Assembly (NCBI GenBank): GCA_002269645.1
Contig: NIVC01003222.1
Coordinates: 1-24,502 of the forward strand
Direction of reading: 5' to 3'
DNA from: Macrostomum lignano
Taxonomy: Eukaryota
DNA: 24,502 nt
Position numbers and translations under genes: made by a program. The number at the start of each line of letters is the position of its first letter. The stretch's first letter is position 1. Under the pieces are notes generated by a model. It saw only the letters and a list, made by a program, of their open reading frames with translations, was not told the origin of the DNA and did not search any database. This document shows, in pieces, positions 1 to 19,906 of this stretch.

Positions 1-410
1 TTTTGCTGAAGTTAAAAGACTTGGGGAAAAGAGGTGACAAAGCTAAATGATCGTATTAGTACGCACTTTAAATTTATTTGCTTTTTTGCAGAAAAAATGC
101 CAATTGCAATTTGATTCTTATTAGCAAATTGAATAGTCATATTCATGCAGTGCTACTTGAAGTAGTTAGACAAGCCGAATTGGAGCGGAATATAGGAAAA
201 TATAAACTTTTATTATAGTGGTGTTCGCTTTATTACGGATGCAAATAGATCGTACAAGTATTGACAAACTTTTGAATTGATTTAATAGTACATAGCTTTG
301 CTGAAAATATAAAAGTACACAGGGAGTCGTTGGTACCCAAGGCAACTTAAGTCGCGTAGTTATGGTAGGGCGGTAGATAAGGAAGCAATTTTCTGTTCAC
401 TATAGGTAGC

Positions 411-1179: not shown

Positions 1180-1202
1180 CTGCGAAGGCGGCAGGTTTAA
1201 CC

Positions 1203-1571
1203 GAGTCACTCCTAACCCTCAGAGAGTCACTTCTAATCATCAGAGAGTCACTCCTAATCATCATCACAGTCACTCCTAATCCTCATCACAGTCACTCCTA
1301 ATCCTCATCACAGTCACTCCTAATCCTCATCACAGTCACTCCTTCACTCCTAATCCTCATCACAGTCACTCCTTCACTCCTAATCCTCATCACAGTCACT
1401 TCTTCACTCCTAATCCTCATCACAGTCACTCCTTCACTCCTAATCCTCATCACAGTCACTCCTAATCTCAGTAGAGTCACTCCTAATCGCCAGAGAGTCA
1501 CTCCTAATCCTCAGAGAGTCACTCCTAATCCTAAGCAGAGTCACTCCTAATTCTTATCAGAGTGACTCCTA
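1203..1571. repeat. 22-bp minisatellite (30-bp variants) in PSMD4 intron 4
   Basis: Unit CACTCCTAATCCTCATCACAGT; variants carry an extra CACTCCTT. Confidence 0.95.
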
Positions 1572-1691
1572 GAAGCTACTTTTAGAGGGCCAGTTTCGTG
1601 GCAATTTGAACCAATTAAAAGGCATTTATTAGCTACTGATAGTAGGCATACAGAGAGTTTTACAATACAGATTAACAAAACAGTTTCTAAC

Positions 1692-1988
1692 CAGTATCAG
1701 CGCCACCCATAACCCTAGCCAGCATCGCTCCTCGGCGTTGCGCGGCGCTTCGCTGCCAGCGCCGGTGCCGGCGCCAGTCGAGGCGGCCACAACACCGCCG
1801 GCTAGGCTGCCGGAGCCCTCCTGATTGGCGTTTTGCTGCTCCTGCCTGGCCCGCTGCTCCTCCATGGAGACGCGCAGAGCCAGTGCCAGCTCCGGGTCGT
1901 CCTGGGCGTCGACGCCGAAGTCGTAGCCGCCGCCGTAGCCCGGCGGCAGCGAGCCGGCGCCGTCTTCGCCGACAACGATTGGGCTTAC
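1692..1988 (-). CDS. PSMD4: Rpn10 exon 4 (UIM1; apparent 1-nt frameshift near 1728)
   Basis: Acceptor CTCAG|GTAAGC; [10 protein letters not shown]...[24 protein letters not shown] is UIM1. Donor G|GTTAGA at 1691 fits exon 5 only if one base is added near 1728, which restores [10 protein letters not shown]. The 3' boundary is less certain. Confidence 0.85.
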
Positions 1989-2001
1989 CTGAGGGATTGA
2001 A

Positions 2002-2640
2002 GGGGCGATTCTTATGATAGTCAGAGGGCGATTCTTATGAGTCAGGGGCCGATTCTCGTGAGTCAGGGCGATTCTCGTGAGTCAGGGCGATTCTCGTGAG
2101 AGTCAGGGCGATTCTTGTGAGAGTCAGGGGCCGATTCCCGTGAGAGTAAGGGCGATTCTCGTTGGATTCAGAGGGTGATTCTCGTGAGAGTAAGGGAGAT
2201 TCTCGTTAGATTCAGAGGGTGATTCTCGTGAGAGTAAGGGAGATTCTCGTTAGATTCAGAGGGTGATTCTCGTGAGAGTCAGAGGGCGATTCTCGTTGGA
2301 TTCAGAGGGTGATTCTCGTGAGAGTCAGAGGGCGATTCTCGTTAGATTCAGAGGGTGATTCTCGTGAGAGTCAGAGGGCGATTCTCGTTGGATTCAGAGG
2401 GTGATTCTCGTGAGAGTCAGAGGGCGATTCTCGTTGGATTCAGAGGTTGATTCTCGTGAGAGTCAGAGGGCGATTCTCGTTAGATTCAGAGGGTGATTCT
2501 CGTTAGATTCAGAGGGTGATTCTCGTCAGAGTCATAGGGCGATTCTCATGAGTGTCAGAGGGTGATTCTCATGAGTCACAGGGAGATTCCAGTGAGAGTC
2601 AGAGGGCGATTTTTATGGAAGTCAGGGGGGGGCGTTTCTC
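2002..2640. repeat. ~23-bp minisatellite, acceptor-proximal half of PSMD4 intron 3
   Basis: Units GAGGGCGATTCTCGTGAGAGTCA and GAGGGTGATTCTCGTTRGATTCA, largely alternating. Confidence 0.95.
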
Positions 2641-3156
2641 CTGAGAGTGAGAGAGATTCTCATGGGAGTGAGAGAGATATTCTCCGGAGTGAGAGAGAGA
2701 TTCTCATGGGAGTGAGAGAGATTCTCATGGGAGTGAGAGAGATTCTCATGGGAGTGAGAGAGAGATTCTCATGGGAGTGAGAGAGAGATTCTCATGGGAG
2801 TGAGAGAGAGATTCTCATGGGAGTGAGAGAGATTCTCATGGGAGTGAGAGAGATTCTCATGGGAGTGAGAGAGAGATTCTCATGGGAGTGAGAGAGAGAG
2901 AGAGATTCTCATGGGAGTGAGAGAGATTCTCATGGGAGTGAGAGAGATTCTCATGGGAGTGAGAGAGATTCTCATGGGAGTGAGAGAGAGATTCTCATGG
3001 GAGTGAGAGAGAGATTCTCCTGAGAGTGAGAGAGATTCTCATGGGAGTGAGAGAGAGATTCTCCTGAGTGAGAGAGAGATTCTCATGGGAGTGAGAGAGA
3101 TTCTCATGGGAGTGAGAGAGATTCTCATGGGAGTGAGAGAGATTCTCATGGGAGTC
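2641..3156. repeat. 21-27-bp minisatellite, donor-proximal half of PSMD4 intron 3
   Basis: Unit GAGAGAGATTCTCATGGGAGT with a variable number of GA dinucleotides. Confidence 0.95.
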
Positions 3157-3198
3157 ACAAGGCGGTTCAAATGAACCCAGTAACAGTCGGTCCCTCAC

Positions 3199-3384
3199 CA
3201 TCAGGCTATCGTGAAGCATAGATCCGGCCGTAACGGTAACCAGATGAGAGCCGGTGCCGTCTTTGCCATTCACAGCATCCAGCATGGCGGTCAGTTTGGT
3301 CTGGTTGGCCTCCTCCTCGCCAAAGTTGACCACGTCTAGACTGACATTCTCCTTTTTAAGCCGTTTGCCCAGGCGAATCAGATC
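3199..3384 (-). CDS. PSMD4: Rpn10 exon 3 (end of vWA domain)
   Basis: Acceptor CCAG|GAT; [51 protein letters not shown] matches Rpn10; donor ATG|GTGAGG. 186 nt, phases 0/0. Confidence 0.95.
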
Positions 3385-3440
3385 CTGGTAACATAAGTTA
3401 TGAATGAAATTCTCAATTAATTAAACTATAGGGATAACTA

Positions 3441-3655
3441 GGGATAACTATCAATACAATATCCCTAATTGGGATAACTATCAATACAATATCCCTAATT
3501 GGGATAAATATAAATAAAATATCCCTAATTGGGATAACTATCAATACAATATCCCTAATTGGGATAACTATCAATACAATATCCCCAATTGGGATAACTA
3601 TCAATACAATATCCCCAATTGGGATACATATCAATAAAATATCCCTAATTGGTAT
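3441..3655. repeat. 30-bp minisatellite, 7 copies, PSMD4 intron 2
   Basis: ATCCCYAATTGG at 3461, 3491, 3521, 3551, 3581, 3611 and 3641. Confidence 0.95.
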
Positions 3656-3677
3656 CAAAGCCCAAAATTGAGCTAAC

Positions 3678-3896
3678 CTTCTCGTCCTCGGCAATAGGCG
3701 AGCCAACGAAGGCCACAATGCGCATTCGCTGATTTCGACTCTGCCTGTGTCGCAGGGCCAAGTGAGCGATGCGAATCGATGTACTAAACTGGATGCTGCC
3801 CCGGGGCTGCACAGACTGCAGCCGGGACATGACCTTCTGGGCGTCCGGGGACAGAGTCACCAGCACTTCGGCGCCAGCCATGCAGATTAAACCGAC
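3678..3896 (-). CDS. PSMD4: Rpn10 exon 2 (vWA domain)
   Basis: Acceptor TTAG|GTC; [18 protein letters not shown]...[33 protein letters not shown]; donor AAG|GTTAGC. 219 nt, phases 0/0. Confidence 0.95.
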
Positions 3897-3923
3897 CTAA
3901 CAGGATTGAATAAATAATAAAAA

Positions 3924-4010
3924 TTTCGATACATATCGGCAACTGAACTCAACTTAACTTTTTCCTTGTAAATGAAAGCTGTTAAAGTTAACTTTCGATA
4001 CATATCGGCA
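3924..4010. repeat. 18-bp perfect direct repeat in PSMD4 intron 1
   Basis: TTTCGATACATATCGGCA at 3924-3941 and 3993-4010. Confidence 0.9.
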
Positions 4011-4078
4011 CTAGCAATTAACCAATAAAACCAATGAACAAACGCACACCGACATGCATGTACGCGATATTTTCTTAC

Positions 4079-4219
4079 CGTATTCTCAGCGTTGGACTTC
4101 TTAGAATGGCAAACCAAACTGACAGCGTCCTGCTGGGCCAGCAGTCTTGTGGGCACAAAATCGCCATTCCGAGCGTAATCGGAATTGTCTACGCAGATCA
4201 CGGTGGCTTCGAGTACCAT
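4079..4219 (-). CDS. PSMD4: 26S proteasome ubiquitin receptor Rpn10/S5a, coding exon 1 (47 codons, start of vWA domain)
   Basis: ATG at 4219; [40 protein letters not shown] matches the conserved Rpn10 N-terminus (human [26 protein letters not shown]). Donor ACG|GTAAGA, phase 0. Confidence 0.96.
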
Positions 4220-4230
4220 GCTGTATGATA
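4220..4230 (-). promoter_or_regulatory. 3' splice acceptor 1 nt upstream of the PSMD4 ATG (5'UTR cis-intron or trans-splice site)
   Basis: Minus strand reads TATCATACAG|C ATG, preceded by an AT-rich region. Confidence 0.5.
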
Positions 4231-5220
4231 TTATTATCAATCAGTCTAATTCTTTGTAGCCGAAAAAGAGAAAAGCAGAAATATTTACAAAAAAAGTTTG
4301 TTTTTACTGCTAGCATTGTCAACCTACTGTAAGTAGAAATAATAAAATGTAGGAAACTTTTTGTTTGCGCAACTAATCTACTATAAGCAATATACGAATA
4401 AAAAGAAAAATAAATAATAAACACAGAAAGGAAAGTAAATATTGATTTTAATAAAAATGTTATATTTAGTAATATAGATTTACAGCGGAAGCTTTAATAG
4501 TAAAAGAAAAAAGGAGTAGCATATCAAAACAAATATTACCAAAAATGAGTAAATCAATAAAAACTTTTAGTTACTCGTGTACCAAACAAAAAGTACAATA
4601 TTTCTGTAGTACATCGTGAACTCTCAATGTAACAAAACTTCTAGCATGAAGGTTTGTATTAACTGGGCAGCATTGCAAATGAAACAAATTATACATACCA
4701 TTCCAATAAATTTGAATTCATTTGCAATGCTGACATCAAGCAATGTGAATAATGATTTGTACTTGAATAAATGAGCTATACTAGCTAGAGTAGGACTAAA
4801 ATAGCTATGGCGATTGTCCAACGAAATAGGCTACAGCGCGTTTTACACTAACACAATAAATACTTATATATAATATATATACAGAAGGAAGATCGTGCAG
4901 TCTGAATAGATTGATAAATTAAAAAAGAATCGAAAATGGGTTGAATCAGAACACTATAAAAAATTATAGCCATATTTAGGCATCATTGTGGCGTTTCAAT
5001 TTTTTTAGATCTATAAATGACGGAAAGAAACACAAAAATCGGTAACTAAAAAAAACAATTTTCAAAAAAGCTGAAAAAAGGCCAGCGAAAAGGCAAGCAA
5101 GCTCAGAAAAAGTTACTTTTTTTAAGTTTAAAGAAAAAACTAAAGTTATTCTAAACTTCTAACAGTAGTTCGGCGTCTTCTATATCCGAAAAAAATTGAA
5201 CACGTTTAGTTAGAGAAGAG

Positions 5221-5598
5221 TATATCTAGCGTAAGAGGGACCAAACGGGGGTTGGCGATGGCAGGCCGCGTGTACATCTAGGGTAAGAGGAGCCAAATAG
5301 GGGTTGGCAGGGGTAGGCCGCGTGTACATCTAGGGTAAGAGGGGCCAAATGGGGGTTGGCAGGGGCAGGCCGCGTGTACATCTAGGGTAAGAGTGGCCCA
5401 ATGGGGGTTGGCGATGGCAGGCCGCGTGTTCATCTAGGGTAAGAGGAGCCAAATGGGGGTTGGCGGGGCCAGACCGTGTGTACATCTAGGGTAAGAGGAG
5501 CCAAATGGGGGTTGGCGGGGGCAGGCCGTGTGTACATCTAGGGCCAGAGGAGCCAAATGGGGGTTGGCGGGGGCAGGCCGCGTGTACATCTAGGGTGA
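5221..5598. repeat. 52-bp G-rich minisatellite, 7 copies, between the two genes
   Basis: CTAG anchor at 5226, 5278, 5330, 5382, 5434, 5486, 5538, 5590; unit AGGGTAAGAGGAGCCAAATGGGGGTTGGCGGGGGCAGGCCGCGTGTACATCT. Confidence 0.95.
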
Positions 5599-6381
5599 GA
5601 GTTTCGTACAGAATGGTTGAGTGTACATCAAGTAAAATGTCGAGCACAACGTACAAAAAAAATATAGTAATCCAACCTAAAAAACATCAGAAAAAGCACG
5701 ACAAAAGCTGGCTAAAGTCCAATAAAATCGTTATTATCACTCTCAAAGGTGAAAATTATCAATTAGTAAATAGCATGCAAGATTAGTTAGTAGCCCTTCG
5801 GCTCTGTATAAGCAAGCGTAGTACCAAATGTCAAGGAAGAAAAGGAATACAATGCAATGCATTAAATAATTTCGGATTAATTAACGAATAGAAAAACAAT
5901 CACAGATTAATAAATTGATGCGTGTGTAAACTGCAACACAAAGGAACAATTTGTATTAATAAAAATCGATTTAATTGAAGGTACTATAATGGTGTAAAAC
6001 TAAAATTAGTACAAATTCATCAATAAAAATTCACAGCTACAATCTATGACGAACTAGAGCAGTAAGGCGGAGAGCGGCAAAGCAACACAGCAGATCTGCA
6101 TGTAGGAGACAGGGCGGGGGCCCGCCAAGGTGGAAGGGCGGACAGTTAAAGAAAGAAATGGCAAAGAGAAAGCATTTAAATTGCAGCTGAAATTGCATTG
6201 AGAGGCCAGACGTAATTGATAAAAATTTTCACAGCAAATCAGGAAGAAATTTATAATATTATAAATAGTCGCGGACACCGATTGACTTGGATGACAGTGT
6301 TCGGAGTACAAGTAAGAGCGGGTCACTGGCAAAGTAGGCGAAATATGGCAACGTACAATCGGACGGGAAGGGAGGCATGTT

Positions 6382-6455
<74 letters not shown>

Positions 6456-6468
6456 AAGACAGGCAGGC

Positions 6469-6549
<81 letters not shown>

Positions 6550-6602
6550 CAGACAGGCAGACAGACAGACAGGCAGAAAGACAGGCAGGCAGACAGACAG
6601 GC

Positions 6603-6633
<31 letters not shown>

Positions 6634-7086
6634 CAGACAGGCAGACAGACAGACAGGCAGAAAGACAGGCAGGCAGACAGACAGACAGAAAGACAGACAG
6701 ACAGACAGACAGACAGAAAGACAGGCAGGCAGACAGACAGGCAGAAAGACAGGCAGGCAGACAGACAGGCAGAGACAGACAGACAGACAGACAGAAAGAC
6801 AGGCAGGCAGACAGACAGGCAGAGACAGACAGACAGACAGACAGAAAGACAGACAGACAGACAGACAGACAGAAAGACAGGCAGACAGACAGACAGACAG
6901 AAAGACAGGCAGGCAGACAGACAGGCAGAAAGACAGGCAGGCAGACAGACAGGCAGAGACAGACAGACAGACAGACAGAAAGACAGGCAGGCAGACAGAC
7001 AGGCAGAGACAGACAGACAGACAGACAGAAAGACAGGCAGGCAGACAGACAGGCAGAGACAGACAGACAGACAGACACAGACAGGC

Positions 7087-7129
<43 letters not shown>

Positions 7130-7500
7130 TAGACACAGACAGACAGACAGACAGACAGGCAGACAGACAGGCAGGCAGACAGACAGACAGACAGACAGAC
7201 ACAGACAGGCAGACAGACAGGCAGAGACAGACAGACAGACACAGACAGGCAGACAGACAGACAGACAGACAGATAGACACAGACAGACAGACAGACACAG
7301 ACAGGCAGACAGACAGGCAGGCAGGCAGACAGACAGACAGACACAGACAGACAGACAGACAGACAGGAAGGCAGACAGACAGGAAGGCAGACAGACAGGC
7401 AGACACAGACAGACAGACAGACGGACAGACACAGACAGGCAGACACAGACAGACAGACAGACGGACAGACACAGACAGACAGATAGACAGACAGATAGAC

Positions 7501-7531
<31 letters not shown>

Positions 7532-7539
7532 GGCAGACA
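6382..7539. repeat. ~1.15-kb compound (GACA)n microsatellite
   Basis: GACA tetramers interspersed with GGCA, GAAA, GATA and GA/CA slips. Confidence 0.98.
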
Positions 7540-7670
7540 AGCCAAGGCCAGAGAAAGACACACAGCAGAAAGACACGCCACCCAATGGCAGGATCAGCCC
7601 ACAGCACAGTAGTGCACACAAATAAACAAACAATGAACCGACAGTTCAATGCTAAGCCAGTTCATCAAAA

Positions 7671-8474
7671 TCAACCGGAACTGGCCACTTGCGCAGTCGT
7701 GACTGCGGACGCGTCGGCGTCAAGGACATCTTGACGTTTCTCTCCAACTTCGACAACCTGTCCAGTGTCATCAGCACCATCATCAGCGGCATCAGAAGGC
7801 TCGCATTCGCAATCGCCGGAAGTGCTGCGCCGCCTAGCCGGAAGTGGCACATCCCCGGCCGACAGCATTCGCTGAATCCAGCATCGCTCAGTAGCCGCCT
7901 CAGCGTCATCATAATTATCCTTATTGTCTTTATCAGCCCAAGGAAACTGCGCCGCTAGCTGGGCGGCGAACTCCTCATCCGGTAGGTAATCCTCGGGGAA
8001 CTCCGTGCAGGGCGGCATCACCAGCGGCCGTCCCGTGGCCCGGTCGCGCAGACAGGTGCACGGCTGCCTGCCGCGGTGCCGCATCTCGTAGCGAATCTCG
8101 GCCTCGCCAACCCGGCCAGGCGGGTAGCGCAGCCGCTGCTGCAGGAAATACGGATAGGGAATCTGGTGCTGCAGGTGCAGAAACCACAGCATGAAGGCGC
8201 TGATGCCGCACTCTTTAGCTGACTGTTCGCGGCAGTGATAGCAGCGGGAGATCAGGTAGGGCGGCAGGTAGGATTTGTTTAAATAATCGTTTCGATCGTG
8301 CCAACGGCAATGGCGGTAGCGCCGGCAGTCGTGGGAGCAGCCCCAGTGGATTGGGTTCGGCGGCACCTCCGGTCTGGGCGCTACGGACAGCACCAGGCCG
8401 GAGCTGCGCTGGCTGCCTGCGGCGGCAGATACGGCAGCGACAGCGTCGACACCCGACTCGCCATCCGACATGAC
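7671..8474 (-). CDS. NRBP-like exon 10 (terminal; Cys/His/aromatic-rich segment and acidic tail)
   Basis: Acceptor CCATTCAG|GTC; 267 open codons to TGA at 7673-7671; GC-rich coding-like composition. Confidence 0.68.
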   Translation of the reverse strand, partial: VMSDGESGVDAVAAVSAAAGSQRSSGLVLSVAPRPEVPPNPIHWGCSHDCRRYRHCRWHDRNDYLNKSYLPPYLISRCYHCREQSAKECGISAFMLWFLHLQHQIPYPYFLQQRLRYPPGRVGEAEIRYEMRHRGRQPCTCLRDRATGRPLVMPPCTEFPEDYLPDEEFAAQLAAQFPWADKDNKDNYDDAEAATERCWIQRMLSAGDVPLPARRRSTSGDCECEPSDAADDGADDTGQVVEVGEKRQDVLDADASAVTTAQVASSG

Positions 8475-8500
8475 CTGAATGGGAGCGAAGTTGAAAGATA

Positions 8501-9122
8501 TGGAAAATTCCACTGGTCCCAAAGCCAAGAGAAATGGAAAATTCCACTGACCCCAAAGCCAAGAGAAATGGAAAATTCCACTGACCCCAAACCAAGAGAA
8601 TTGGAAAATTCCACTGACCCAAACCCAAGAGAATTGGAAAATTCCACTGACCCCAAACCCAAGAGAATTGGAAAATTCCACTGACCCCAAAACCAAGAGA
8701 AATGGAAAATTCCACTGACCCCAAAGCCAAGAGAAATGGAAAATTCCACTGACCTCAAAACAAAGAGAAATGGAAAATTCCACTGACCTCAAAACCAAGA
8801 GAAATGGAAAATTCCACTGACCTCAAAACCAAGAGAAATGGAAAATTCCACTGACCTCAAAACCAAGAGAATTGGAAAATTCCACTGACCCCAAAACCAA
8901 GAGAAATGGAAAATTCCACTGACCCCAAAGCCAAGAGAAATGGAAAATTCCACTGACCTCAAAACAAAGAGAAATGGAAAAATTCCACTGACCTCAAAAC
9001 CAAGAGAAATGGAAAATTCCACTGACCTCAAAACCAAGAGAAATGGAAAATTCCACTGACCTCAAAGCCAAGAGAAATGGAAAATTCCACTGACCCCAAA
9101 GCCAAGAGAATTGGAAAATTCC
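8501..9122. repeat. ~34-bp minisatellite, 19 cores, NRBP intron 9
   Basis: Unit GAGAAATGGAAAATTCCACTGACCYCAAAACCAA. Confidence 0.97.
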
Positions 9123-9145
9123 ATCAAAACGACAAAAAAACTCAC

Positions 9146-9553
9146 CCCTCTATTCGATGACGCGGAACGACGCTCGTCCGTGGACTCCGACGCAGCTGCC
9201 GCTGTGGCCAATCCACCAGCAACCTCTTCGTTTGCAGCAGGCGGCGGCGCTTCAGCCGTAGCAGCGGCCGCTCCGGTGAAGTCGGCAGCCTCAGGCGGTT
9301 CGCTGTCAGCTCGAGATCGCTGCTTCCGTCTGCTTCGCTGCTGCCGCATCAGCTGACTGTGGGAATGCTGCTGCTGCTGATGGAGCTGCTGCTGCGCCTG
9401 GCCGCCAGCTCCGGGATAAAAATCCTGCGGATATTTGCGAAATCTTTCCCGCTCTCTGGCGGCCGACAAATCGAACAGGCGATCTTTGAGCTGCTGCAAC
9501 TCCTGCCGGTCTGTCTCCCAGTCCACGGCTGCTGAGCTCTCCGGCTGGACCGC
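9146..9553 (-). CDS. NRBP-like exon 9 (charged helix/coiled-coil, then Q/A-rich)
   Basis: Acceptor ATCGCAG|GCG; AVQPESSAAVDWETDRQELQQLKDRLFDL...; donor GGG|GTGAGT; 408 nt, phases 0/0. Confidence 0.7.
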
Positions 9554-9572
9554 CTGCGATAGGGCGATATGC

Positions 9573-10113
9573 GATACTCCAGTGTGACAGGCAGATACTC
9601 CAGTATAACAGGGAGATACTCCAGTCTAACAGGGAGACACTCGAGTCTAACAGGGAGATACTCGAGTCTAACAGGGAGACACTCGAGTCTAACAGGGAGA
9701 CACTCGAGTCTAACAGGGAGACACTCGAGTCTAACAGGGAGATACTCGAGTCTAACAGGGAGATACTCGAGTCTAACAGGGAGACACTCGAGTCTAACAG
9801 GGAGACACTCGAGTCTAACAGGGAGACACTCGAGTCTAACAGGGAGATACTCGAGTCTGACAGGGAGACACTCGAGTCTAACAGGGAGACACTCGAGTCT
9901 AACAGGGAGACACTCGAGTCTAACAGGGAGACACTCGAGTCTAACAGGGAGATACTCGAGTCTGACAGGGAGACACTCGAGTCTAACAGGGAGACACTCG
10001 AGTCTAACAGGGAGACACTCGAGTCTAACATGGAGACACTCGAGTCTAACAGGGAGACACTCGAGTCTAACAGGGAGACACTCGAGTCAAACAGGGAGAC
10101 ACTCGAGTCTAAC
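9573..10113. repeat. 21-bp minisatellite, ~25 copies, NRBP intron 8
   Basis: Unit AACAGGGAGAYACTCGAGTCT, degenerating toward the acceptor. Confidence 0.97.
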
Positions 10114-10121
10114 AGCCTCAC

Positions 10122-10414
10122 CATCAGCTGGCAGCTGTGATTGTCGGTGATGCACGGCAGCAGTGCCGCATCGTCGGTTGCAGTCTCTTCCGTCACTTTT
10201 GTGCCCGCTTTTTCTTCTGCTTCTGGTGCTCCTAGTGCGGCTGGTTCGCTATCTGCGGTGTCAGCTCTATCGACAGTTTCAAGAATTGGCAACTCTTCTT
10301 TAGTTGGAGACTTCTGTGCGGCGGCTGCGGCTGCCACGGCGGTCTCTCTGAGCAGGAGCAACTTCTCATTAAGCACGTTGGGATCCAACTCCCAGCCGCC
10401 GCCGCCGCCGCCAC
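10122..10414 (-). CDS. NRBP-like exon 8 (low-complexity extension)
   Basis: Acceptor ACCAG|GT (phase 1); GGGGGGGWELDPNVLNEKLLLLRE...; donor ATG|GTGAGG, phase 0. Supported by frame continuity only. Confidence 0.7.
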
Positions 10415-10459
10415 CTGGTTTACAGAGAGGGTTGAGAACATTCATTTTTAGTATCTATG

Positions 10460-11075
10460 GTCCCTAAAAGTACAATCAAACCACGTATAGGGTCCTAAAG
10501 TACAACCCTAAAAGTACTTTTAAGAAATATGGTGCCAAAAGTACAAAGCTACAATCTAGGGTTCCTAAAGTAAAAACTGACCATTCAATGGCCTTACTTT
10601 TTACCGGGTAGGGTACAATAAAATACGGATTATTTAGGGCCCTCTAAAAAGTACAAACTGGTCATCTAGGGTTCCAAAAGTAAAACTTTCCATCTACGAG
10701 ATGCACAAACTGATTACACAGGGTTTCAAAAGTACAAAATGACCATCTAGGGCTCCTAAAGTACAAACTGGCTGTTTAGAGTTTCAAAAGTGCAAAATGA
10801 CCATCTAGGGCTCCTAAAGTACAAACTGGCTGTTTAGAGTTTCTAGGGCTCCTAAAGTACAAACTGGCTGTTTAGTTTCAAAAGTGCAAAATGACCATCT
10901 AGGGCTCCTAAAGTACAAACTGGCTGTTTAGAGTTTCAAAAGTGCAAAATGACCATCTAGGGCTCCTAAAGTACAAACTGGCTGTTTAGAGTTTCAAGAG
11001 TGCAAAATGACCATCTAGGGCTGCTAAAGTACAAACTGGCTGTCTAGAGCTTCAAAAGTGCAAACTGACTATCCA
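10460..11075. repeat. 58-bp (2 x 29-bp) higher-order repeat, NRBP intron 7
   Basis: GACCATCTAGGG at 10741, 10799, 10893, 10951 and 11009; degenerate monomers from about 10460. Confidence 0.9.
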
Positions 11076-11099
11076 GAGTCTTCATCAAGCAGCACCAAC

Positions 11100-11460
11100 C
11101 AATGCCAGCAACAACAGCCTGCTGTTGCAGATGAGCAGCGGCTCCGGATGTACTATTAGCGATTGTCACGGCGGACGCGGCTACCGACGAAGTCGCTGCG
11201 GTGGTTGTCGTTTGCTCTGTAGCCGGCGCAGGATCATCGTTGTGACCTCCGCCGCTGCCGCTGCCACAGTCCGTAGCAAGACTGCGACTAATAGCGCGCT
11301 GTACGGCAGATTCGTAGTCTTTGTGCGGCTCAGGCCAGCCCATCTTGCGGCAGAGCTGACGATAGCGCTGAATGTAACCGAATACGGTCGGATGGCCGGC
11401 GTAGGCCAGGGCCAGGCGACGGTGCAGCTCGGCGCGATCTTCCGGACTGCACACGGACAC
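11100..11460 (-). CDS. NRBP-like exon 7 (last NRBP helix, then start of extension)
   Basis: Acceptor TTCCGCAG|GTG; VSVCSPEDRAELHRRL weakly resembles NRBP GFISEADQSRL; GC-rich coding-like composition; donor G|GTTGGT (phase 1) matches exon 8. Confidence 0.72.
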
Positions 11461-11580
11461 CTGCGGAATTATTCGCCAGAACGGGGGAGCGAGGTAAAGT
11501 ACACTGACCATGGAGCTGGGATGACACTACTAAGATTTGATGCTACTGCCAGGTAAGGATTCTTTAATATTTCATGATAG

Positions 11581-12955
11581 CGGGTCAAGTTACACTTCAG
11601 TGGGTCATGACAATGGGTCAGGTACACTTCAGTGGGTCATGACAATGGGTTAAGGTACACTTCAGTGGGTCATGACAATGGGTCAAGGTACACTTCAGTG
11701 GGTCATGACAATAAGTCAAGTTACACTTCAGTGGGTCATGACAATGGGTCAAGGTACACTTCAGTGGGTCATGACAATGGGTCAAGGTACAATCCAATGG
11801 GTCATGACAATGGGTCAGGTACACTTCAGTGGGTCATGACGATGGGTCAAGATACTATTCAGTGGGTCATGACAATGAGTCAAGATACTATTCAGTGGGT
11901 CATGACAATGGGTCAAGTTACACTTCAGTGGGTCATGACAATGGGTCAAGTTACTATTCAGTGGGTCATGACAATGGGTCAAGATACTATTCAGTGGGTC
12001 ATGACAATGGGTCAAGGTACACTCCAATGGGTCATGACAATGGGTCAGGTACACTTCAGTGGGTCATGACAATGGGTCAAGGTACACTCCAATGGGTCAT
12101 GACAATGGGTCAAGTTACACTTCAGTGGGTCATGACAATGGGTCAAGTTACTATTCAGTGGGTCATGACAATGGGTTAAGGTACACTTCAGTGGGTCATG
12201 ACAATGGGTCAAGGTACACTCCAATGGGTCATGACAATGGGTCAGGTACACTTCAGTGGGTCATGACAATGGGTTAAGGTACACTTCAGTGGGTCATGAC
12301 AATGGGTCAGGTACACTTCAGTGGGTCATGACAATGGGTCAAGATACTATTCAGTGGGTCATGACAATGGGTCAAGTTACACTTCAGTGGGTCATGACAA
12401 TGGGTCAAGTTACTATTCAGTGGGTCATGACAATGGGTTAAGATACTATTCAGTGGGTCATGACAATGGGTTAAGGTACACTTCAGTGGGTCATGACAAT
12501 GGGTCAAGGTACAATCTAATGGGTCATGACAATGGGTCAGGTACACTTCAGTGGGTCATGACGATGGGTCAAGATACTATTCAGTGGGTCATGACAATGA
12601 GTCAAGATACTATTCAGTGGGTCATGACAATGGGTCAAGATACCATTCAGTGGGTCATGACAATGGGTCAAGATACCATTCAGTGGGTCATGACAATGGG
12701 TCAAGATACTATTCAGTGGGTCATGACAATGGGTCAAGATACCGTTCAGTGGGTCATGACAATGGGTCAAGATACCATTCAGTGGGTCATGACAATGAGT
12801 CAAGATACTATTCAGTGGGTCATGACAATGGGTCAAGGTACACTTCAGTGGGTCATGACAATGGGTTAAGATACTATTCAGTGGGTCATGACAATGAGTC
12901 AAGATACTATTCAGTGGGGTGATAACAATGGGTCAAGATTCTTTTCACTGGGTCA
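11581..12955. repeat. 33-bp minisatellite, ~40 copies, NRBP intron 6 (acceptor side)
   Basis: Unit GGGTCATGACAATGGGTCAAGGTACACTTCAGT; 40 GTCATGAC cores counted by eye. Confidence 0.98.
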
Positions 12956-13307
12956 GCACAATAAGATAAGCAAGAGAAGACTATTTAGTTGCTCATAAAA
13001 TGGGTCAAGAATATTTTTTGTGGTTTAAGCGAAAATTTTAGACTCTTTAAATACGAAAAAGATGAAAGCAATCGGAATATGATACGGATTTACTGTCCCT
13101 TACACATTAAGATCGTTTTTAAGTTCAACGCTACCAAACAATAGCGATTTTGAATACTGAATATAAGTTACCAACCCGCACCAATTATCTATGAATATCC
13201 CAAAAAATTCTCGAAAACTGACAGCACCTTAGATAAATAGGAAATCATAGTTAAAAGCAACCAACAGGAGAAATAAAATTAAAACAAAAGCAACTCAGTG
13301 CACTTAC

Positions 13308-13398
13308 GCAGTGTAGTGAGAGCAACGAAATTACGCGCGAGAATAGTCGAGTAACAATAAATATAATTAAATTGCAAAAACAAAATAACAAAACTACG
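13308..13398 (-). other. Candidate 91-nt frame-shifting cassette (poison) exon in NRBP intron 6
   Basis: Acceptor CTTCTTTACTTTTTTTCGCAG| and donor C|GTAAGT, both near-consensus; 91 nt is not a multiple of 3. Confidence 0.4.
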
Positions 13399-13475
13399 CT
13401 GCGAAAAAAAGTAAAGAAGGTGCAGTGGATACTTTGAGAATAAAAAAATAAACGCAAGCTAACAGACTTGCGTTT

Positions 13476-14440
13476 GGGGATGGGGATCTTGGGATTTATG
13501 GAATGGGGATCTTGGAATTCATGGAATGGGGATCTTGGGATTTATGGAGTGGGGATCTTGGGATTTATGGAATGGGGATCTTGGGATTTATGGAGTGGGG
13601 ATCTTGGGATTTATGGAATGGGGATCTTGGGATTTATGGAGCGGGATCTTGAGATTTATGGAATGGGGATCTTGGAATTCATGGAATGGGGATCTTGGGA
13701 TTTATGGAGTGGGGATCTTGGGATTTATGGAATTGGGATCTTGGGATTTATGGAGTGGGGATCTTGGGATTTATGGAATTGGGATCTTGGGATTTATGGA
13801 GTGGGGATCTTGGGATTTATGGAATGGGGATCTTGGGATTTATGGAGCGGGATCTTGAGATTTATGGAATGGGGATCTTGGAATTCATGGAATTGGGATC
13901 TTGGGATTTATGGAGTGGGGATCTTGGGATTTATGGAATGGGGATCTTGGGATTTATGGAATTGGGATCTTGGGATTTATGGAGTGGGGATCTTGGGATT
14001 TATGGAATTGGATATCTTGGGATTTATGGAATGGCGATCTTGGGATTTATGAAATGGGGATCTTTGGATTTATGGAGCGGTATCTTGGGATTTATGGAAT
14101 TGGGATCTTGGGATTCATGGAATGGGGATCTTGGGATTTATGGAATGGGGATCTTGGGATTTATGGAATGGGGATCTTGGGATTTATGGAATTGGGATCT
14201 TGGGATTCATGGAGTGGGGATCTTGGGATTCATGGAGTAGGGATCTTGGGATTCATGGAGTGGGGATCTTGGGATTCATGGAGTCGGGATCTTGGGATTT
14301 TTCGTTGAGGATCTGGGGATTGTTTAGTGGGGATCTTGAAATTTTTGCATGGGGAACTTGGGATTAATGGGGCAGGGATTGTGGGATTCATGGAGTGGGG
14401 ATCCTAGGATTCTTCGTTGGGGATCTTTACAGTTTTTCGT
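13476..14440. repeat. 22-23-bp minisatellite, NRBP intron 6 (donor side)
   Basis: Unit GGGATCTTGGGATTTATGGA(ATG/GTG/ATT). Confidence 0.97.
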
Positions 14441-14558
14441 TAGGGATTATTTATATTTTTAGGATGGGATTTTTGAGTTCTTGAGTTCTTTGATATCTTG
14501 AGTTCTAGGCAAAACACACAGCAACTTAAAGAAATGAGCCTACAACGTTTCAACTCAC

Positions 14559-14915
14559 CTCGTCAATCATAAAAGTGGTCAAATAATCCAAGTCGCTGTA
14601 TTCGGACTCGACAAACTGACAATGCGCATTTCTCATTATGTTCTCTTTGCCAAACCACAGTCGAACGTGGACGTCCCACCTCCCTAAGCCGATGTAGATG
14701 ATGTAAACGTCTATGAACTGTGCTCGACTAGTGATCTGTTTAGTCGGCGGCTCGTGATTCTCGTTGTCAACAACTAGGATGCTGTCCTCTTCATCGTCGT
14801 AATCGCCGAATAAGTCCAGCTTGGTTGGCTCCTGCTGCTGCTGAGCAGCTTCATCTGGGGTATTAAGAGTCGACTCGGAACCATTGTTAACAGCTGATGC
14901 GCCATTGGGGGAGAC
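14559..14915 (-). CDS. NRBP: NRBP-like exon 6 (C-terminal NRBP domain)
   Basis: Acceptor TTCATAG|GTC; 119 open codons ending WDVHVRLWFGKENIMRNAHCQFVESEYSDLDYLTTFMIDE, which resembles the NRBP C-terminal domain; donor GAG|GTGAGT. Confidence 0.8.
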
Positions 14916-14940
14916 CTATGAATCCCAGGTTCGAGACTGA

Positions 14941-15690
14941 GTTAGGCGATTCTCATAGAGATTACAGGGCAATTCTCATAGAGATTACAGGGCAATTCTC
15001 ATGGAGATTACAGGGCAATTCTCATAGAGATTACAGGGCGATTCTCATGGGGATTACAGGGCGATTCTCATGGGGATTACAGGGCGATTCTCATAGAGAT
15101 TACAGGGCGATTCTCATGGAGATTACAGGGCGATTCTCATGGAGATTACAGGGCAATTCTCATAGAGATTACAGGGCGATTCTCATAGAGATTACAGGTC
15201 GATTCTCATGGGATTACAGGGCGATTCTCATAGAGATTACAGGGCAATTCTCATGGAGATTACAGGGCAATTCTCATAGAGATTACAGGGCGATTCTCAT
15301 GGGGATTACAGGGCGATTCTCATGGGGATTACAGGGCGATTCTCATAGAGATTACAGGGCGATTCTCATGGAGATTACAGGGCGATTCTCATGGAGATTA
15401 CAGGGCAATTCTCATAGAGATTACAGGGCGATTCTCATAGAGATTACAGGTCGATTCTCATGGGGATTACAGGGCGATTCTCATAGAGATTACAGGGCAA
15501 TTCTCATAGAGATTACATGATAAATCTCATAGAGATTATAGGACAAATCTCATAGAGATTATAGGACAAATCTCATAGAGATTATAGGACAAATCTCATA
15601 GAGATTATAGGACAAATCTCATAGAGATTATAGGACAAATCTCATAGAGATTATAGGACAAATTTCATAGAGATTATAGGAGAAATCTCA
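14941..15690. repeat. 23-bp minisatellite with two subdomains, NRBP intron 5
   Basis: ACAGGGCGATTCTCATAGAGATT to about 15520, then ATAGGACAAATCTCATAGAGATT. Confidence 0.97.
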
Positions 15691-15712
15691 ATTAAAAACA
15701 CAGCACACTTAC

Positions 15713-16271
15713 ACAAGCGTCCCCAGCAAGCAAACCAGTGGACACATTGGAAACCGCATCAGATAGTTGGACAGAACTAGCACTGCCAGGTGCCGATACA
15801 GCGGTAGTAGTAGTAGTTGTAGTTAAAGTCGCTACGGATTGATTCTGTTCCATCATCGGAGCGCCTTTGTTATCAAACCCAGAGTCAGTCAGGCCAGCAG
15901 CCGGTGACACAGGTGCCACTGTAGACAGCTTAGCGGTGCCTGACACTGATGCAGATACAGTAGCACTATTAAGAGCAGAAGAAACTGAGACAGCAATTGC
16001 AGGTGGCTCATTGCCGATACTACTACTACTAATACTACTTGCAGCAGTAGTCAGATTATTAGACACAGAAGCAGTTTCTAATATAATTGGCGAGCTTCTT
16101 TCGCTGGCAGAATCTGCAACAGATGCCGGTTTCAATGATTGTACGTCAGAATTAGCCGGTAAAGTAGCTGTTGAACCAGTACTACTGTTAGTAGAAGAGG
16201 CTGCTAAGTTTTGCAGAATCTGCGAATTCTGTGAAGAGGATAGCGAACTAGCTAATGATTGTTGCTGTTGT

Positions 16272-16303
<32 letters not shown>

Positions 16304-16406
16304 TCTCTTCTGCGAAGGTGTTCGACTAACGCTGGCGTTGGGGCCCGCCGAGCCGCCGTGGCTTGACTTAGATCGAGCGATGCCGAATATTGGATAGAAG
16401 CCGTAC
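15713..16406 (-). CDS. NRBP: NRBP-like exon 5 (YGFYP motif, then polyQ and Ser/Thr/Ala-rich linker)
   Basis: Acceptor CCGCAG|G; RYGFYPIFG matches NRBP RNGIYPLTAFG; open for 231 codons; donor TGT|GTAAGT, phase 0. Confidence 0.85.
16258..16304 (-). repeat. CAG/CAA polyglutamine tract (~15 Q) in NRBP exon 5
   Basis: Mixed TTG/CTG triplets on the plus strand, in frame with exon 5. Confidence 0.9.
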
Positions 16407-16429
16407 CTGCGGTTTGGCAGTTCGAGTTT

Positions 16430-16945
16430 GCTTTAGGTCCCGAGTTCGAGTCCGGTATAGGTCCCGAGTTCGATTCCGGTAAAGGTCCTGAGACTATAGG
16501 TCCCGAGTTTGAGTCTGCTATAGGTCCCGAGTTCGAGTCCGGTATAGGTCGCGATTTCGAGCCTAATATAGGTCCTGAGTTCGAGCCCGGTATACATTAG
16601 GTGCCGAGTTCGAGCCCGGTATACATTAGGTGCCGAGTTCGAGCCCGGTATAGGTGCCGAGTTCGAGCCCGGTATAGGTGCCAAGTTCGAGCCTATTAAG
16701 AGCTTATTAATCATAAGCTCCCCGATCTCCCCGACTTTGAGTTTGGCATAGATCCCTAGTTCAAGCCTGGCATAGCTCCCCGACTTTGAGTTAGGTATAG
16801 GTCCCGCGTTCGAACCCGGTATAGGTCCCGAGTTCGAGTCTGGTAAATCTCCTAAGATCAAGCCCAGTAAAACTTCCGACCCGAATTTTAGTGTCGGTAA
16901 AGATCTGAGTTTGAGTTTTGGTAAAGGTCCCAAGTTCGAGCCCCA
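16430..16945. repeat. Degenerate 24-bp minisatellite, NRBP intron 4
   Basis: Consensus CCGAGTTCGAGYCCGGTATAGGTC, clearest at 16437-16690. Confidence 0.85.
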
Positions 16946-17111
16946 AGCTTTAATAGGGCTTTGGCAGTAAGCCCCGCGTCCTGAGCTTGACACTCCTAGT
17001 AAAACATCACTGGCATGGAAGTTAAGAGCCCGATGCACTTTTTAAGCTGCGCTACTGAGTTCGAATCTGTGAAAAGTTATCGAAACTATTCTATATGTTT
17101 CAAAGGCATAC

Positions 17112-17292
17112 CTGATGTCTTCAAGAAAGCGAACAGTCATAGACAGAGAATGAGTCATCTCTTTAACGTAGCGAGTTCTCTCAATGCCGTCCTTAGTCAT
17201 TTTGCAGATCACCGTGTCATTGTCAAATTTGTCATTGAAATGGTCTACTAGCTCCTGTAAGCGGCTGTTGTCTCCGCGCCTCTCGGCCGGAA
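17112..17292 (-). CDS. NRBP: NRBP-like exon 4
   Basis: Acceptor TTGCAG|TT (phase 1); IPAERRGDNSRLQELVDHF...VRFLEDIR matches NRBP MIPEN...KFLEDVR; donor AG|GTATGC, phase 2. Confidence 0.85.
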
Positions 17293-17384
17293 CTGCAATT
17301 GTCCAATTTTGGAGAAAATAAGTGCTCTGGTAATTAAAATTATCTTAACAACTGATGCGATTGATTTTCTAATGAGAATGATCT

Positions 17385-17990
17385 AATTACACAATCAGGG
17401 TGATTTAATTATCTAATAAGAATTATATAATTATCTAATAAGAATATTCTAATCACCTAATGGGAATTATCTAATTATCTAATGAGAACATTTCAATTAC
17501 TTGATGAGAATAATCTAATCATCTAATGCTAATAATCTAATCACCTAATGGGAATTATCTAATCACCTAATGTGAAAAATCTAATCACCTAATGTGAAAA
17601 ATCTAATAATCACCTGATGAGAATTATCGAATCACCTAATGAGAATTATCTAATCACCTAATGTGAAAAATCTAATCACCTAATGTGAAAAATCTAATAA
17701 TCACCTAATGAGAATTATCGAATCACCTAATGAGAATCATCTAATCACCTAATGAGAATTGTCTAATCACCTAATGAGAGTTATCTAATCACCTAATGAG
17801 AATAATTCAATGACTTAATGTGAATGAGAATAATAATCACCTAATGAGAACTATCTAATCGTTATCTAATCACCTAATGAGAACTATCTAATGACCTAAT
17901 GAGAGTTATCTAATCACCTAATGAGAACTATCTAATGACCTAATGAGAGTTATCTAATCACCTAATGAGAATTATCGGATCACCTAATTA
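17385..17990. repeat. ~22-bp minisatellite, NRBP intron 3
   Basis: Unit CTAATCACCTAATGAGAATTAT; 17 exact CACCTAAT cores. Confidence 0.93.
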
Positions 17991-18117
17991 AAACGATCTA
18001 TTAAAATAAACCAATTTAATTCCGATAATAACTAATAACTATTAGCTTAGAACTAATAATCCAAGTCTACTCTAATGTAACAACAACCAAAGCGCAAATC
18101 AAACAAAAGACACTCAC

Positions 18118-18749
18118 TAAAGGACACCAGAGCAGTGCCGCACAGAATGACAAGAGACGGCACCTCCAGCAGAGCCCGGTGCTGGTACAGCTCAGCCAGA
18201 GACAGCCGCCGGCTAGGATCGGCTTCTAAGCAGCCAATGAAAAAGTCGCGCATGACACTGTCGGAAACTCTCGCTAGCATCGTTTCGATGCGATGGTCGC
18301 GAGAAATCTGCTGCTGCTCTTCTTGTTGTTGCTGCTGCTGCTGTTGTTGTTGCTGCTCCTGTTGCTGCTTCTGCTGCTGACTAGTTGCCGATTCGTTCGA
18401 GTTAGCCGAGTCTTTAGCGTCCCAGGTAAGAATCTCCAGTGACAGCAGGCCGACCGCGTAGATGTCGCTGGCTAGGTTAACTCGAACCATCGGACCTGAA
18501 GGCGGCGTTGCTGCTTCCGCTGTAGCAGAATCTGCAACATTTTCGGCTGAAGCGGCAACGGATTGGCGACATTCCGGCGCCAGGTAAGCGACGCTCTGCG
18601 GCACCCTGGAGTAGTCCGTCAACCTCTGTCTAGACGATCCGAGGCACTGGCTAATAGCGAAGCAGCCGACTTTAAGTGTACCGCTAGTGTGATAATGAAT
18701 CGATTCGCTGCTCAAGTTGCCGTGCACTATGCCGGCGTCTGATAGGAAC
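18118..18749 (-). CDS. NRBP: NRBP-like exon 3 (pseudokinase C-lobe, polyQ insert, BC-box)
   Basis: IVHGNL (no catalytic Asp, as in NRBP HGNL), LKVG in place of DFG, YLAPE, SDIYAVG, RDFFIGCLEADPSRR, LLEVPSLVILC. Acceptor GAAG|G; donor A|GTGAGT. Confidence 0.92.
18310..18380 (-). repeat. Interrupted polyglutamine tract inside the pseudokinase C-lobe
   Basis: QQQKQQQEQQQQQQQQQQQEEQQQ in exon 3. Confidence 0.9.
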
Positions 18750-18849
18750 CTTCAGGTGTTGGTCGTTTGGGAATTATCGGAGACAGTTAAGAAAAAGGCT
18801 ATAACAACTATTTGCTTAAGTAAAAAACACTAGCAGAGTCAACAAAACA

Positions 18850-19065
18850 AAAGGTCATTTGAAGGTCCAGCAGGCAAAAGGTCACTTCAAGGTCAAGAAC
18901 AGAGGGTCAATTTAAGGTCAAGCACACAAAAAAGGTCAAAGGTCAAGTTAATTAGGTCAATATTTCTGTCAACCTATTGTTACTTTTCCCCTTTCAAGGT
19001 CGCATTAAAGGCAAGTAAAGGAAAGTACCGGTAAGGTCACTTCAAGGTCATGAAATCAGGTCAAG
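18850..19065. repeat. Decayed repeat or homotypic AGGTCA cluster, NRBP intron 2
   Basis: 10 AGGTCA plus 1 GGGTCA, all in the same orientation. Confidence 0.85.
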
Positions 19066-19101
19066 CTAATGCCCACAAAAATGAATGAAGAAACCACTCA
19101 C

Positions 19102-19310
19102 TTAATAACGGACAGCAGGATGCCGGTGTACTTTCTCCACATGACACTGTTAATCTTGGAGTTGCTTAGGTACTGTTTAAGCGAGCCTTCCTCCGTTCTT
19201 TCGGTGACGAATACGAATTTTGATTGGCCATCTTCTAACTGCACTGTCCAGTTGTCCAGGATTCGAACCATCGACGGATGATTAATGCGCCTCAGTTTGC
19301 GGAAAAGCGA
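19102..19310 (-). CDS. NRBP: NRBP-like exon 2 (pseudokinase N-lobe/hinge)
   Basis: SLFRKLRRINHPSMVRILDNW...FVFVTERTEEGSLKQYL...WRKYTGILLSVI aligns without gaps to NRBP. Acceptor is AAG (CTAATCAAG|TCG); donor AA|GTGAGT, phase 2. Confidence 0.85.
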
Positions 19311-19394
19311 CTTGATTAGGGAGGGGGGGCGATTGTTGTTAACACTAAAACTCTCCGGTTATTGATACCCTAATCCCAAGTCTTCCGACTTTCC

Positions 19395-19895
19395 AAATCC
19401 CCAGTTATCAATCCCTAGTTATCAGATATTAATCCCTGGTTATCGATATTAATCCCTAGGTATCAATATTAATCCCTGGTTAACAACATTACCCTCATTT
19501 ATCGATATAAACGACCCAGTTATCGATATTAATCTCTAGTTATCGATATCAAGCCCCAGTTATCGATGTTGATCCTGGTTATCAAAACTAACGCGTTATC
19601 GATATTTACTCCCTAGTTTTCGATAATAATCCCTAGCGCTATCGATACTAACCGTTAGTTATTGGTAATAATTCCTAGTTATCGATACTAATGCCTAGTT
19701 ATCGATATTAACTCCTAATTACCGAGAATAATGAGTAGTTATCAGTATTAATTTTAGGTTATCAATTTTAATGCTTAAATATCGATACTACATCGATATG
19801 CCAGTTACAAATATCCCTAATCCTGAGCTAACGATTGTCTAATCTAAAGCATCAAAATAATTAATGTCGACATCGATAAACCAAATCGATATCAA
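19395..19895. repeat. Decayed ~20-21-bp minisatellite with a TATCGATA core, NRBP intron 1
   Basis: Consensus about GTTATCGATATTAATCCCTA; 9 exact TATCGATA. Confidence 0.88.
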
Positions 19896-19906
19896 AGTGA
19901 AATTAC

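Follow-up and report, generated by a model that had tools for sequence, protein, structure and literature searches.

The stretch analysed here, referred to as the window, is a whole 24.5-kb contig (24,502 nt) of Macrostomum lignano from assembly GCA_002269645.1. It carries PSMD4 and, upstream of it on the same (minus) strand, an NRBP-like pseudokinase gene. This report concerns three minisatellite arrays in introns of this gene neighbourhood, the kinship of their repeat units and the way in which they may have come to fill their introns. The arrays are named A1 (PSMD4 intron 3), A2 (placed in NRBP intron 8 by an earlier note on this DNA) and A3 (placed there in NRBP intron 5). Splice sites were set by the PSMD4 protein and by open reading frame (ORF) continuity; the spliced PSMD4 coding sequence (exons 1–4, minus strand) is 100% identical to protein P0001 (BOX15_Mlig025766g1) over the 264 aa queried. 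Tandem Repeats Finder (TRF) detected about 16 tandem arrays in the window, covering 43% of its length, and simple and tandem repeats together make up 15% of the whole M. lignano genome (PMC5730564). Three further genomic copies of the region on paralogous contigs (L001, L002 and L003) were compared with the window, to which their non-array DNA is 93%, 98% and, over 1.5 kb, 100% identical, respectively.

TRF recovered all three arrays, as head-to-tail repeats at 2003–3168 (A1, 23-bp period, with a 21-bp sub-array at 2636–3155), 9576–10115 (A2, 21 bp) and 14945–15680 (A3, 23 bp), with 52, 26 and 32 copies, respectively, and matches of 82–95%. The units quoted for them in the earlier note are correct rotations of the consensus, although two details for A2 needed correction. 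Its unit is 21 bp long, not 20, and the quoted form is the minority GAGATACTC on the plus strand, while the majority form GAGACACTC accounts for 19 of the 26 units and matches ACAGGGCGATTCTC at 11 of 14 positions rather than the 12 reported. The introns and their array domains are as follows, with a slash marking each splice junction.

1989–3198, minus strand: PSMD4 intron 3, host of A1; donor CTGATG/GTGAGG at 3198, acceptor CCCTCAG/GTAAGC at 1989.
2003–2620, minus strand: acceptor-proximal domain of A1; 23-bp sense units GAGAATCGCCCTCTGACTCTCAC alternating with GAGAATCACCCTCTGAATCTAAC, with variants that include GAGAATCTCCCTTACTCTCAC.
2636–3168, minus strand: donor-proximal domain of A1; derived 21/23-bp units GAGAATCTCTCTC(TC)ACTCCCAT, from which the CpG-containing core is gone.
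9554–10121, minus strand: A2 intron; donor CTGATG/GTGAGG, acceptor TATCGCAG/GCGG; the array makes up 95% of the intron.
9576–10115, minus strand: A2 array; 21-bp units GAGTGTCTCCCTGTTAGACTC (majority) and GAGTATCTCCCTGTTAGACTC.
9555–9580, minus strand: acceptor-side edge unit of A2, GAGTATCGC[ATATCGC]CCTATCGCAG, which carries ATCGCCCT; the L001 version is AATCGCCCT.
14916–15712, minus strand: A3 intron; donor GCTTGT/GTAAGT, acceptor TTCATAG/GTCTCC, with an ORF continuous over the junction.
14945–15505, minus strand: acceptor-proximal domain of A3; 23-bp units GAGAATCGCCCTGTAATCTCTAT, with variants ending in CTCCAT and CCCCAT.
15506–15690, minus strand: donor-proximal domain of A3; derived units GAGATTTGTCCTATAATCTCTAT.

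The acceptor-proximal domain of A3 is organized as a higher-order repeat of 11 units (252 bp), and its donor-proximal type is the dominant one in paralogue L001. The A2 edge unit contains a 7-bp micro-duplication. In favour of assigning A2 to NRBP, its flanking exons join into one uninterrupted ORF on that strand, but these exons lie outside P0124, the sole NRBP model found (exons 20422–19907, 19316–19071, 18751–18119 and 17293 onward), and Pfam returned no domains for the exons on either side of A2 and A3. Further ORF-bearing exons follow those of P0124, and the host of A2 may be a third gene rather than NRBP. Hairpin-forming or slippage-prone structure was no more pronounced in the three units (z from 0 to -2.1) than in unrelated ones. 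As a separate observation, the plus strand through A3 (14945–15520), antisense to its host, contains no stop codon over 191 aa, though most units hold a TAG. Against shuffled unit order this has P = 0.0006, largely because the 252-bp, 11-unit repeat is exactly 84 codons long; a search of a 5.8-billion-protein set with the peptide found no homologue.

The kinship of A1 and A3 is carried by several measures. The 12-mer previously proposed as common to PSMD4 intron 3 and NRBP intron 5, AGGGCGATTCTC, occurs exactly 23 times in the window, nine times in A1 and 14 times in A3, and nowhere else. Allowing up to one mismatch yields 46 matches, all on the plus strand and all within A1 or A3, where 0.08 would be expected. 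In addition, units were compared in both orientations and all rotations against shuffled units, in one set of 15 consensus units (105 pairs) and a second of 24 units (276 pairs). A1 and A3 scored z = 10.3 on the same strand in the first set, and A3 and A1a scored z = 10.8 in the second. BLAST recovered shared 12- to 14-mers (E = 0.003–0.04), and the unit variants of the two arrays, both of 23-bp period, jointly define a common stretch of 17 nt, CCCATGAGAATCGCCCT. Judged by their sequences, A1 and A3 are homologous beyond doubt.

The case for A2 is weaker. Its window consensus compared with A1 and A3 gave z = 1.9–2.0 (p = 0.06–0.075) in the 105-pair set and p = 0.017–0.023 in the 276-pair set, with z = 3.1 against A3. 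Searching for the core with up to two mismatches adds A2 and one stray site, with 1.2 matches expected by chance in the remaining window. Other evidence points more clearly to kinship. The orthologous A2 unit in the roughly 7% diverged paralogue L001, GAGTATCTCCCTGTCAGACTG, reaches z = 4.5 with A3 and 4.0 with A1a; the A1 variant GAGAATCTCCCT bridges the two types, differing by one mismatch from the A2 core GAGTATCTCCCT; the A2 edge unit holds (A)ATCGCCCT in both the window and L001; and the core sub-array of A3 in L001 has a 21-bp period, as in A2. A2 is therefore probably a more diverged member of the A1/A3 family. The proposal that one shared seed underlies all three introns thus stands firmly for A1 and A3, which exceed their shuffled controls, and only as a probability for A2, whose window consensus falls at p = 0.02–0.07.

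Other arrays show partial resemblances of their own. In NRBP intron 3, a 22-bp array (17369–18059) contains ATGAGAATT on the plus strand, an inverted form of the family's sense-strand motif, and it is a possible distant, inverted member (z about 3–3.6, not significant). The 30-bp unit of PSMD4 intron 2 (3441–3652) and the 20-bp unit of NRBP intron 1 (19406–19752, also 19810–19821) have an exact 13-mer in common (E = 0.009, z = 4.5), mostly in opposite orientation, and both units are partly palindromic. A 16-bp array (GTGTGGGACAGGGAGA)n begins 12 nt past the donor of a PNK3P-like intron located 8 kb downstream of PSMD4 (L003 21609–21888). It has TCTCCCTGTC in common with A2 in opposite orientation (z = 7.3), making it a candidate relative, and its sense strand carries GGG runs at canonical G-quadruplex spacing. 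A metagenome search for two cores spaced 9–11 nt apart matched a single bacterial contig with a 2.5-copy, 21-bp repeat, which was set aside as a chance match.

All arrays occupy the same introns in L001, L002 and L003. Orthologous arrays are more alike than different members of the family, and A1 differs from A3 in L001 just as it does in the window, which indicates that the spread predates the divergence of the copies and gives no sign of continuing exchange. The arrays have nonetheless changed in length: the A1 intron measures 1210 nt in the window, 1211 nt in L003, 819 nt in L002 and 1031 nt in L001, and the A2 intron 568 or 482 nt among the copies. Each array consists of two domains, with core-bearing units at the acceptor side and derived, CpG-less units towards the donor, in the order ATCTCTCTC for A1, ATTTGTCCT for A3 and GTCTCCCT for A2; the domain sizes of A3 vary between paralogues. 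This polarity is ordinary minisatellite behaviour, in which array edges escape homogenization.

The arrays were also claimed to be anchored at acceptors, and they do lie close to them, at 14 nt (A1), 22 nt (A2) and 29 nt (A3). However, unrelated arrays lie equally close, at 12, 21 and 24 nt (units of 24, 34 and 22 bp, respectively), and in 10 of the 11 introns whose ends were mapped (window 1180–19906) minisatellites of different units, 20–58 bp long, make up 53–96% of the intron. Arrays likewise start 6–32 nt past donors, adjoining both intron ends because they fill the introns. Closeness to the acceptor thus comes with the filling of introns by arrays and is not peculiar to the A1/A2/A3 family. 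The four acceptor-proximal sites of sense ATCGCC (plus-strand GGCGAT at 2004, 9563, 14945 and 19328) were correctly placed, about 8–28 nt upstream of their acceptors, but three of them are merely array edges, and with 4 of 13 introns represented at such varied distances the core is not a fixed-distance feature of acceptors. The fourth site is of a different kind:

19326–19337, minus strand: unamplified core-like 12-mer AACAATCGCCCC, located 19 nt upstream of the acceptor of NRBP intron 1.

This 12-mer matches the terminal A1 copy, AAGAATCGCCCC, at 11 of 12 positions and is the sole occurrence of AATCGCCC outside the three array introns, with a chance probability, calculated post hoc, of about 0.01–0.03. 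Among the last 40 nt of 13 introns, six pairs score at least 10, where shuffles predict 1.7. A further motif, CTCGAAC (within AAACTCGAAC in two cases), ends 13–15 nt upstream of three acceptors, those of NRBP intron 4 (16407–16440), the A3 intron (14916–14945) and the PNK3P-like intron (L003 21920–21948). The array of NRBP intron 4 has a 24-bp unit that also begins with this motif, which could represent a relic unit or something akin to a branch site. Regarding orientation, A1, A2 and A3 do share one direction relative to transcription, their hosts being on the minus strand. A bias does not follow, as three arrays in co-oriented genes would agree by chance with a probability of 0.25 and the candidate relative in the PNK3P-like intron is inverted. 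Family arrays number 3 of 11 intronic and 0 of 4 intergenic arrays, which gives no guide to any enrichment in introns.

On balance, we favour, with somewhat better than even confidence, the explanation that a single minisatellite family, acting as neutral intron filler, includes A1, A3 and probably A2 as diverged members. A single ancestral unit of about 21–23 bp, reading GAG(A/T)ATCGCCCT on the sense strand followed by about 9–11 pyrimidine-rich bases and ending in AT or AC, would have been seeded, alone or as a short array, into introns of neighbouring genes transcribed in the same direction, at a time when the region's genomic copies had yet to diverge. Each array would then have expanded and changed in situ through slippage and unequal exchange, with interior and donor-side units homogenized to derived, CpG-less variants and acceptor-side and edge units retaining the old core. 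Seeding might have proceeded by local DNA copying or by carriage on a dispersed element; no transposon ends were seen, and outside the arrays the three introns bear no relation to one another. The arrays would be non-coding, and no role in splicing is indicated. Of the two alternatives put forward in the earlier note, the first is supported as regards common descent, which is beyond doubt for A1 and A3 and probable for A2; the second, amplification of a 3'-splice-proximal element, has observations in its favour that are taken up below. The family is real and ordinary in kind, and neither acceptor anchoring nor orientation sets it apart.

Several points weigh against this explanation. For a randomly dispersed family, it is a high number to have three or perhaps four related arrays out of some 21 within about 35 kb; such a density would require local copying, unless the family is very common. 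Taken alone, the A2 consensus from the window is not significantly similar to A1 or A3. Furthermore, core-bearing units adjoin the acceptor in all three arrays, and an unamplified core stands upstream of a fourth acceptor, an arrangement more readily explained by an origin from a 3' intron element than by seeding at random. Lastly, neutrality is an assumption.

The strongest competitor builds on that arrangement. A short lineage-specific sequence of the AATCGCCC(C/T) type, as a rule present once only, close upstream of some acceptors, could have been multiplied separately in each intron, from acceptor towards donor, much like the boundary-anchored 'mirage' minisatellites of amphioxus. The acceptor-nearest units of all three arrays carry ATCGCCCT while donor-side units are derived, the single copy in NRBP intron 1 and the excess of similar intron 3' ends would be expected, and each unit closes with a pyrimidine-rich run followed by GAG, resembling an acceptor. 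On the other hand, A1 and A3 agree well beyond an 8-mer, in sequences of up to 14 nt, in the 17-nt composite stretch and in the 23-bp period, so that the amplified element would already have been about 20 nt long and identical in both introns, which is effectively a shared family. The scarcity of the core among introns and its shifting distance from the acceptor, the lack of exon sequence in the units, the tiny sample and the post hoc choice of the 8-mer also count against independent amplification, which we regard as unlikely, though the most serious of the alternatives.

A more far-reaching possibility is that the introns marked by the family arose in the Macrostomum lineage, through inserted copies of intron-like or mobile DNA whose interior was later expanded into arrays. 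At the A1 intron site (DSLM/VSPIV) the exons are continuous in Schistosoma, Pecten and Asterias, so this intron would most simply be a gain in the Macrostomum lineage, and PSMD4 intron 4 (1180–1691) is likewise absent from all three. PSMD4 intron 2 is also present in Pecten and, to the resolution of overlapping tblastn pieces, in Schistosoma, and intron 1 lies 6–7 codons off the Pecten/Asterias boundary. Overall, the PSMD4 positions suggest gain or sliding of introns in the Macrostomum lineage. The A1 intron is flanked by G/GTGAG and G/GTAAG. In L003, an intron of a ropporin-like gene (gene 18021–19263, intron 18333–18897, minus strand) holds a 72-bp array and reads CTGCAG/GTTGGTTC at one end and CACAAAG/GTTGGC at the other, with the same flanking 7-mer; AG/GTTGG stands on both sides and the donor is non-consensus. 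Direct repeats of this sort are expected where duplication or staggered-break repair has given rise to an intron.

The A1 and A2 introns also both start with CTGATG/GTGAGG, with CTGTTA soon after. As a sign of intron copying, this shared donor 12-mer was rejected as background, since the two donor contexts agree at 13 of 20 positions in register and an unrelated intron pair does equally well. The apparent terminal inverted repeat TGAGGGA...TCCCTCA at the ends of the A1 intron was discarded too, being the natural complementarity of donor and acceptor consensus. Further against intron birth, the three introns are unrelated outside their arrays, with neither clear terminal inverted repeats nor clear target-site duplications; PSMD4 intron 2, an ancient intron, bears a minisatellite as well, so arrays are not confined to new introns; and the A2 and A3 positions, set among lineage-specific, low-complexity exons, are not comparable across species. 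We consider it improbable that the family marks introns born in this way. The broader proposition that repeat-carrying DNA, whether a copied intron-like piece or a multiplied 3' intron end, made or propagated new Macrostomum introns is hardly more probable; if it were true, the lineage-specific A1 site and the single-copy core at another acceptor would make the shared seed a footprint of intron birth.

Chance resemblance among unrelated pyrimidine-rich intronic repeats is also improbable, being ruled out for A1 and A3 (46 matches against 0.08 expected, z = 10–11, BLAST) and conceivable for A2, where p = 0.02–0.07 per pair was obtained among more than 100 pairs and about 1.2 core matches with up to two mismatches are expected in the remaining window, but where kinship is indicated alike by the L001 unit, by the A2 edge unit and by the A1 variant that bridges the two types.

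Some features of the region lie outside this argument. In PSMD4 exon 4, at about 1715 (GAGGAG-CGATG), the window copy is one G short relative to L001–L003, and the resulting frameshift accounts for the truncated 294-aa protein of the annotated PSMD4 model, BOX15_Mlig032866g2. Either the missing base is an indel of the assembly or this copy is disabled. Another copy, P0008, has no introns. Between both genes lies a (GACA)n tract (6382–7539) of 1.16 kb, whose length ranges from 0.76 to 2.27 kb across the four genomic copies. Rfam and tRNA scans of the window returned no RNA family and no tRNA.

Altogether, these results document a previously undescribed minisatellite family, as no description of intronic minisatellite families or introners in Macrostomum was found in the literature searched, and they demonstrate that M. 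lignano introns at this locus can be almost wholly minisatellite. Such introns matter for assembly, for annotation, where array ORFs and read-through gene models arise, and for the design of transgenes in this model flatworm. Were the family tied genome-wide to lineage-specific introns or to acceptor-proximal sequence, it would offer an animal system for studying the origin and growth of introns, a subject with few tractable cases, in a species for which transgenesis is already established.

Among known systems, the amphioxus mirage minisatellites are repeats at exon–intron boundaries, with units that span the boundary and contain exon sequence, and it has been proposed that new intron positions can arise through them (PMC3087553). 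The arrays described here resemble them in being intronic minisatellites located by splice sites, with AG/GT-like signals in the units and splicing undisturbed, in their length instability, and in having cluster edges that lie outside homogenization (PMC3087553). In contrast to mirage units, for which a core shared between genes is unreported (PMC3087553), A1 and A3 share theirs. The defining feature is also lacking, as the units stop 14–29 nt before the exon and contain no exon sequence.

Introners, found in Micromonas, Aureococcus and fungi, are near-identical over their full length, occur in many copies and often carry terminal repeats and target duplications. Likenesses to introners and introner-like elements (PMC4457414) include related sequence in introns of unrelated genes, orientation in the sense of transcription and, for A1, a host intron at a lineage-specific position. 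Unlike introners, the three introns share only the tandem unit; full-length similarity is absent, non-array flanks differ, no terminal repeats were found, and the only flanking repeat is a weak GGTGAG/GGTAAG at A1. By the features tested, the family is not an introner. As for tandem arrays that themselves become introns, Zhuo et al., in PNAS in 2007, reportedly described introns derived from such arrays, whose repeats supply the splice sites used and generate alternative introns. Those introns and the present ones both involve tandem arrays with splice-site-like units inside or forming introns, but the splice sites used here lie in unique or edge sequence, and we know of no use of the many pseudo-acceptors within A1, A2 and A3.

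The closest counterpart is provided by hypervariable minisatellites of the Jeffreys type, in which tandem units of 10–60 bp at separate loci share a core of 10–15 bp. Common to both are tandem units with a shared core at separate loci, variation in copy number and polarity of variants along the array. The present arrays differ in that their core is unrelated to the human GGGCAGGAXG-type core, that they fill entire introns of housekeeping genes, and that the three known loci all lie inside 14 kb. With these differences, A1, A2 and A3 exhibit the features of the Jeffreys type that were tested, namely tandem units, copy-number variation and, between A1 and A3, a core shared beyond chance.

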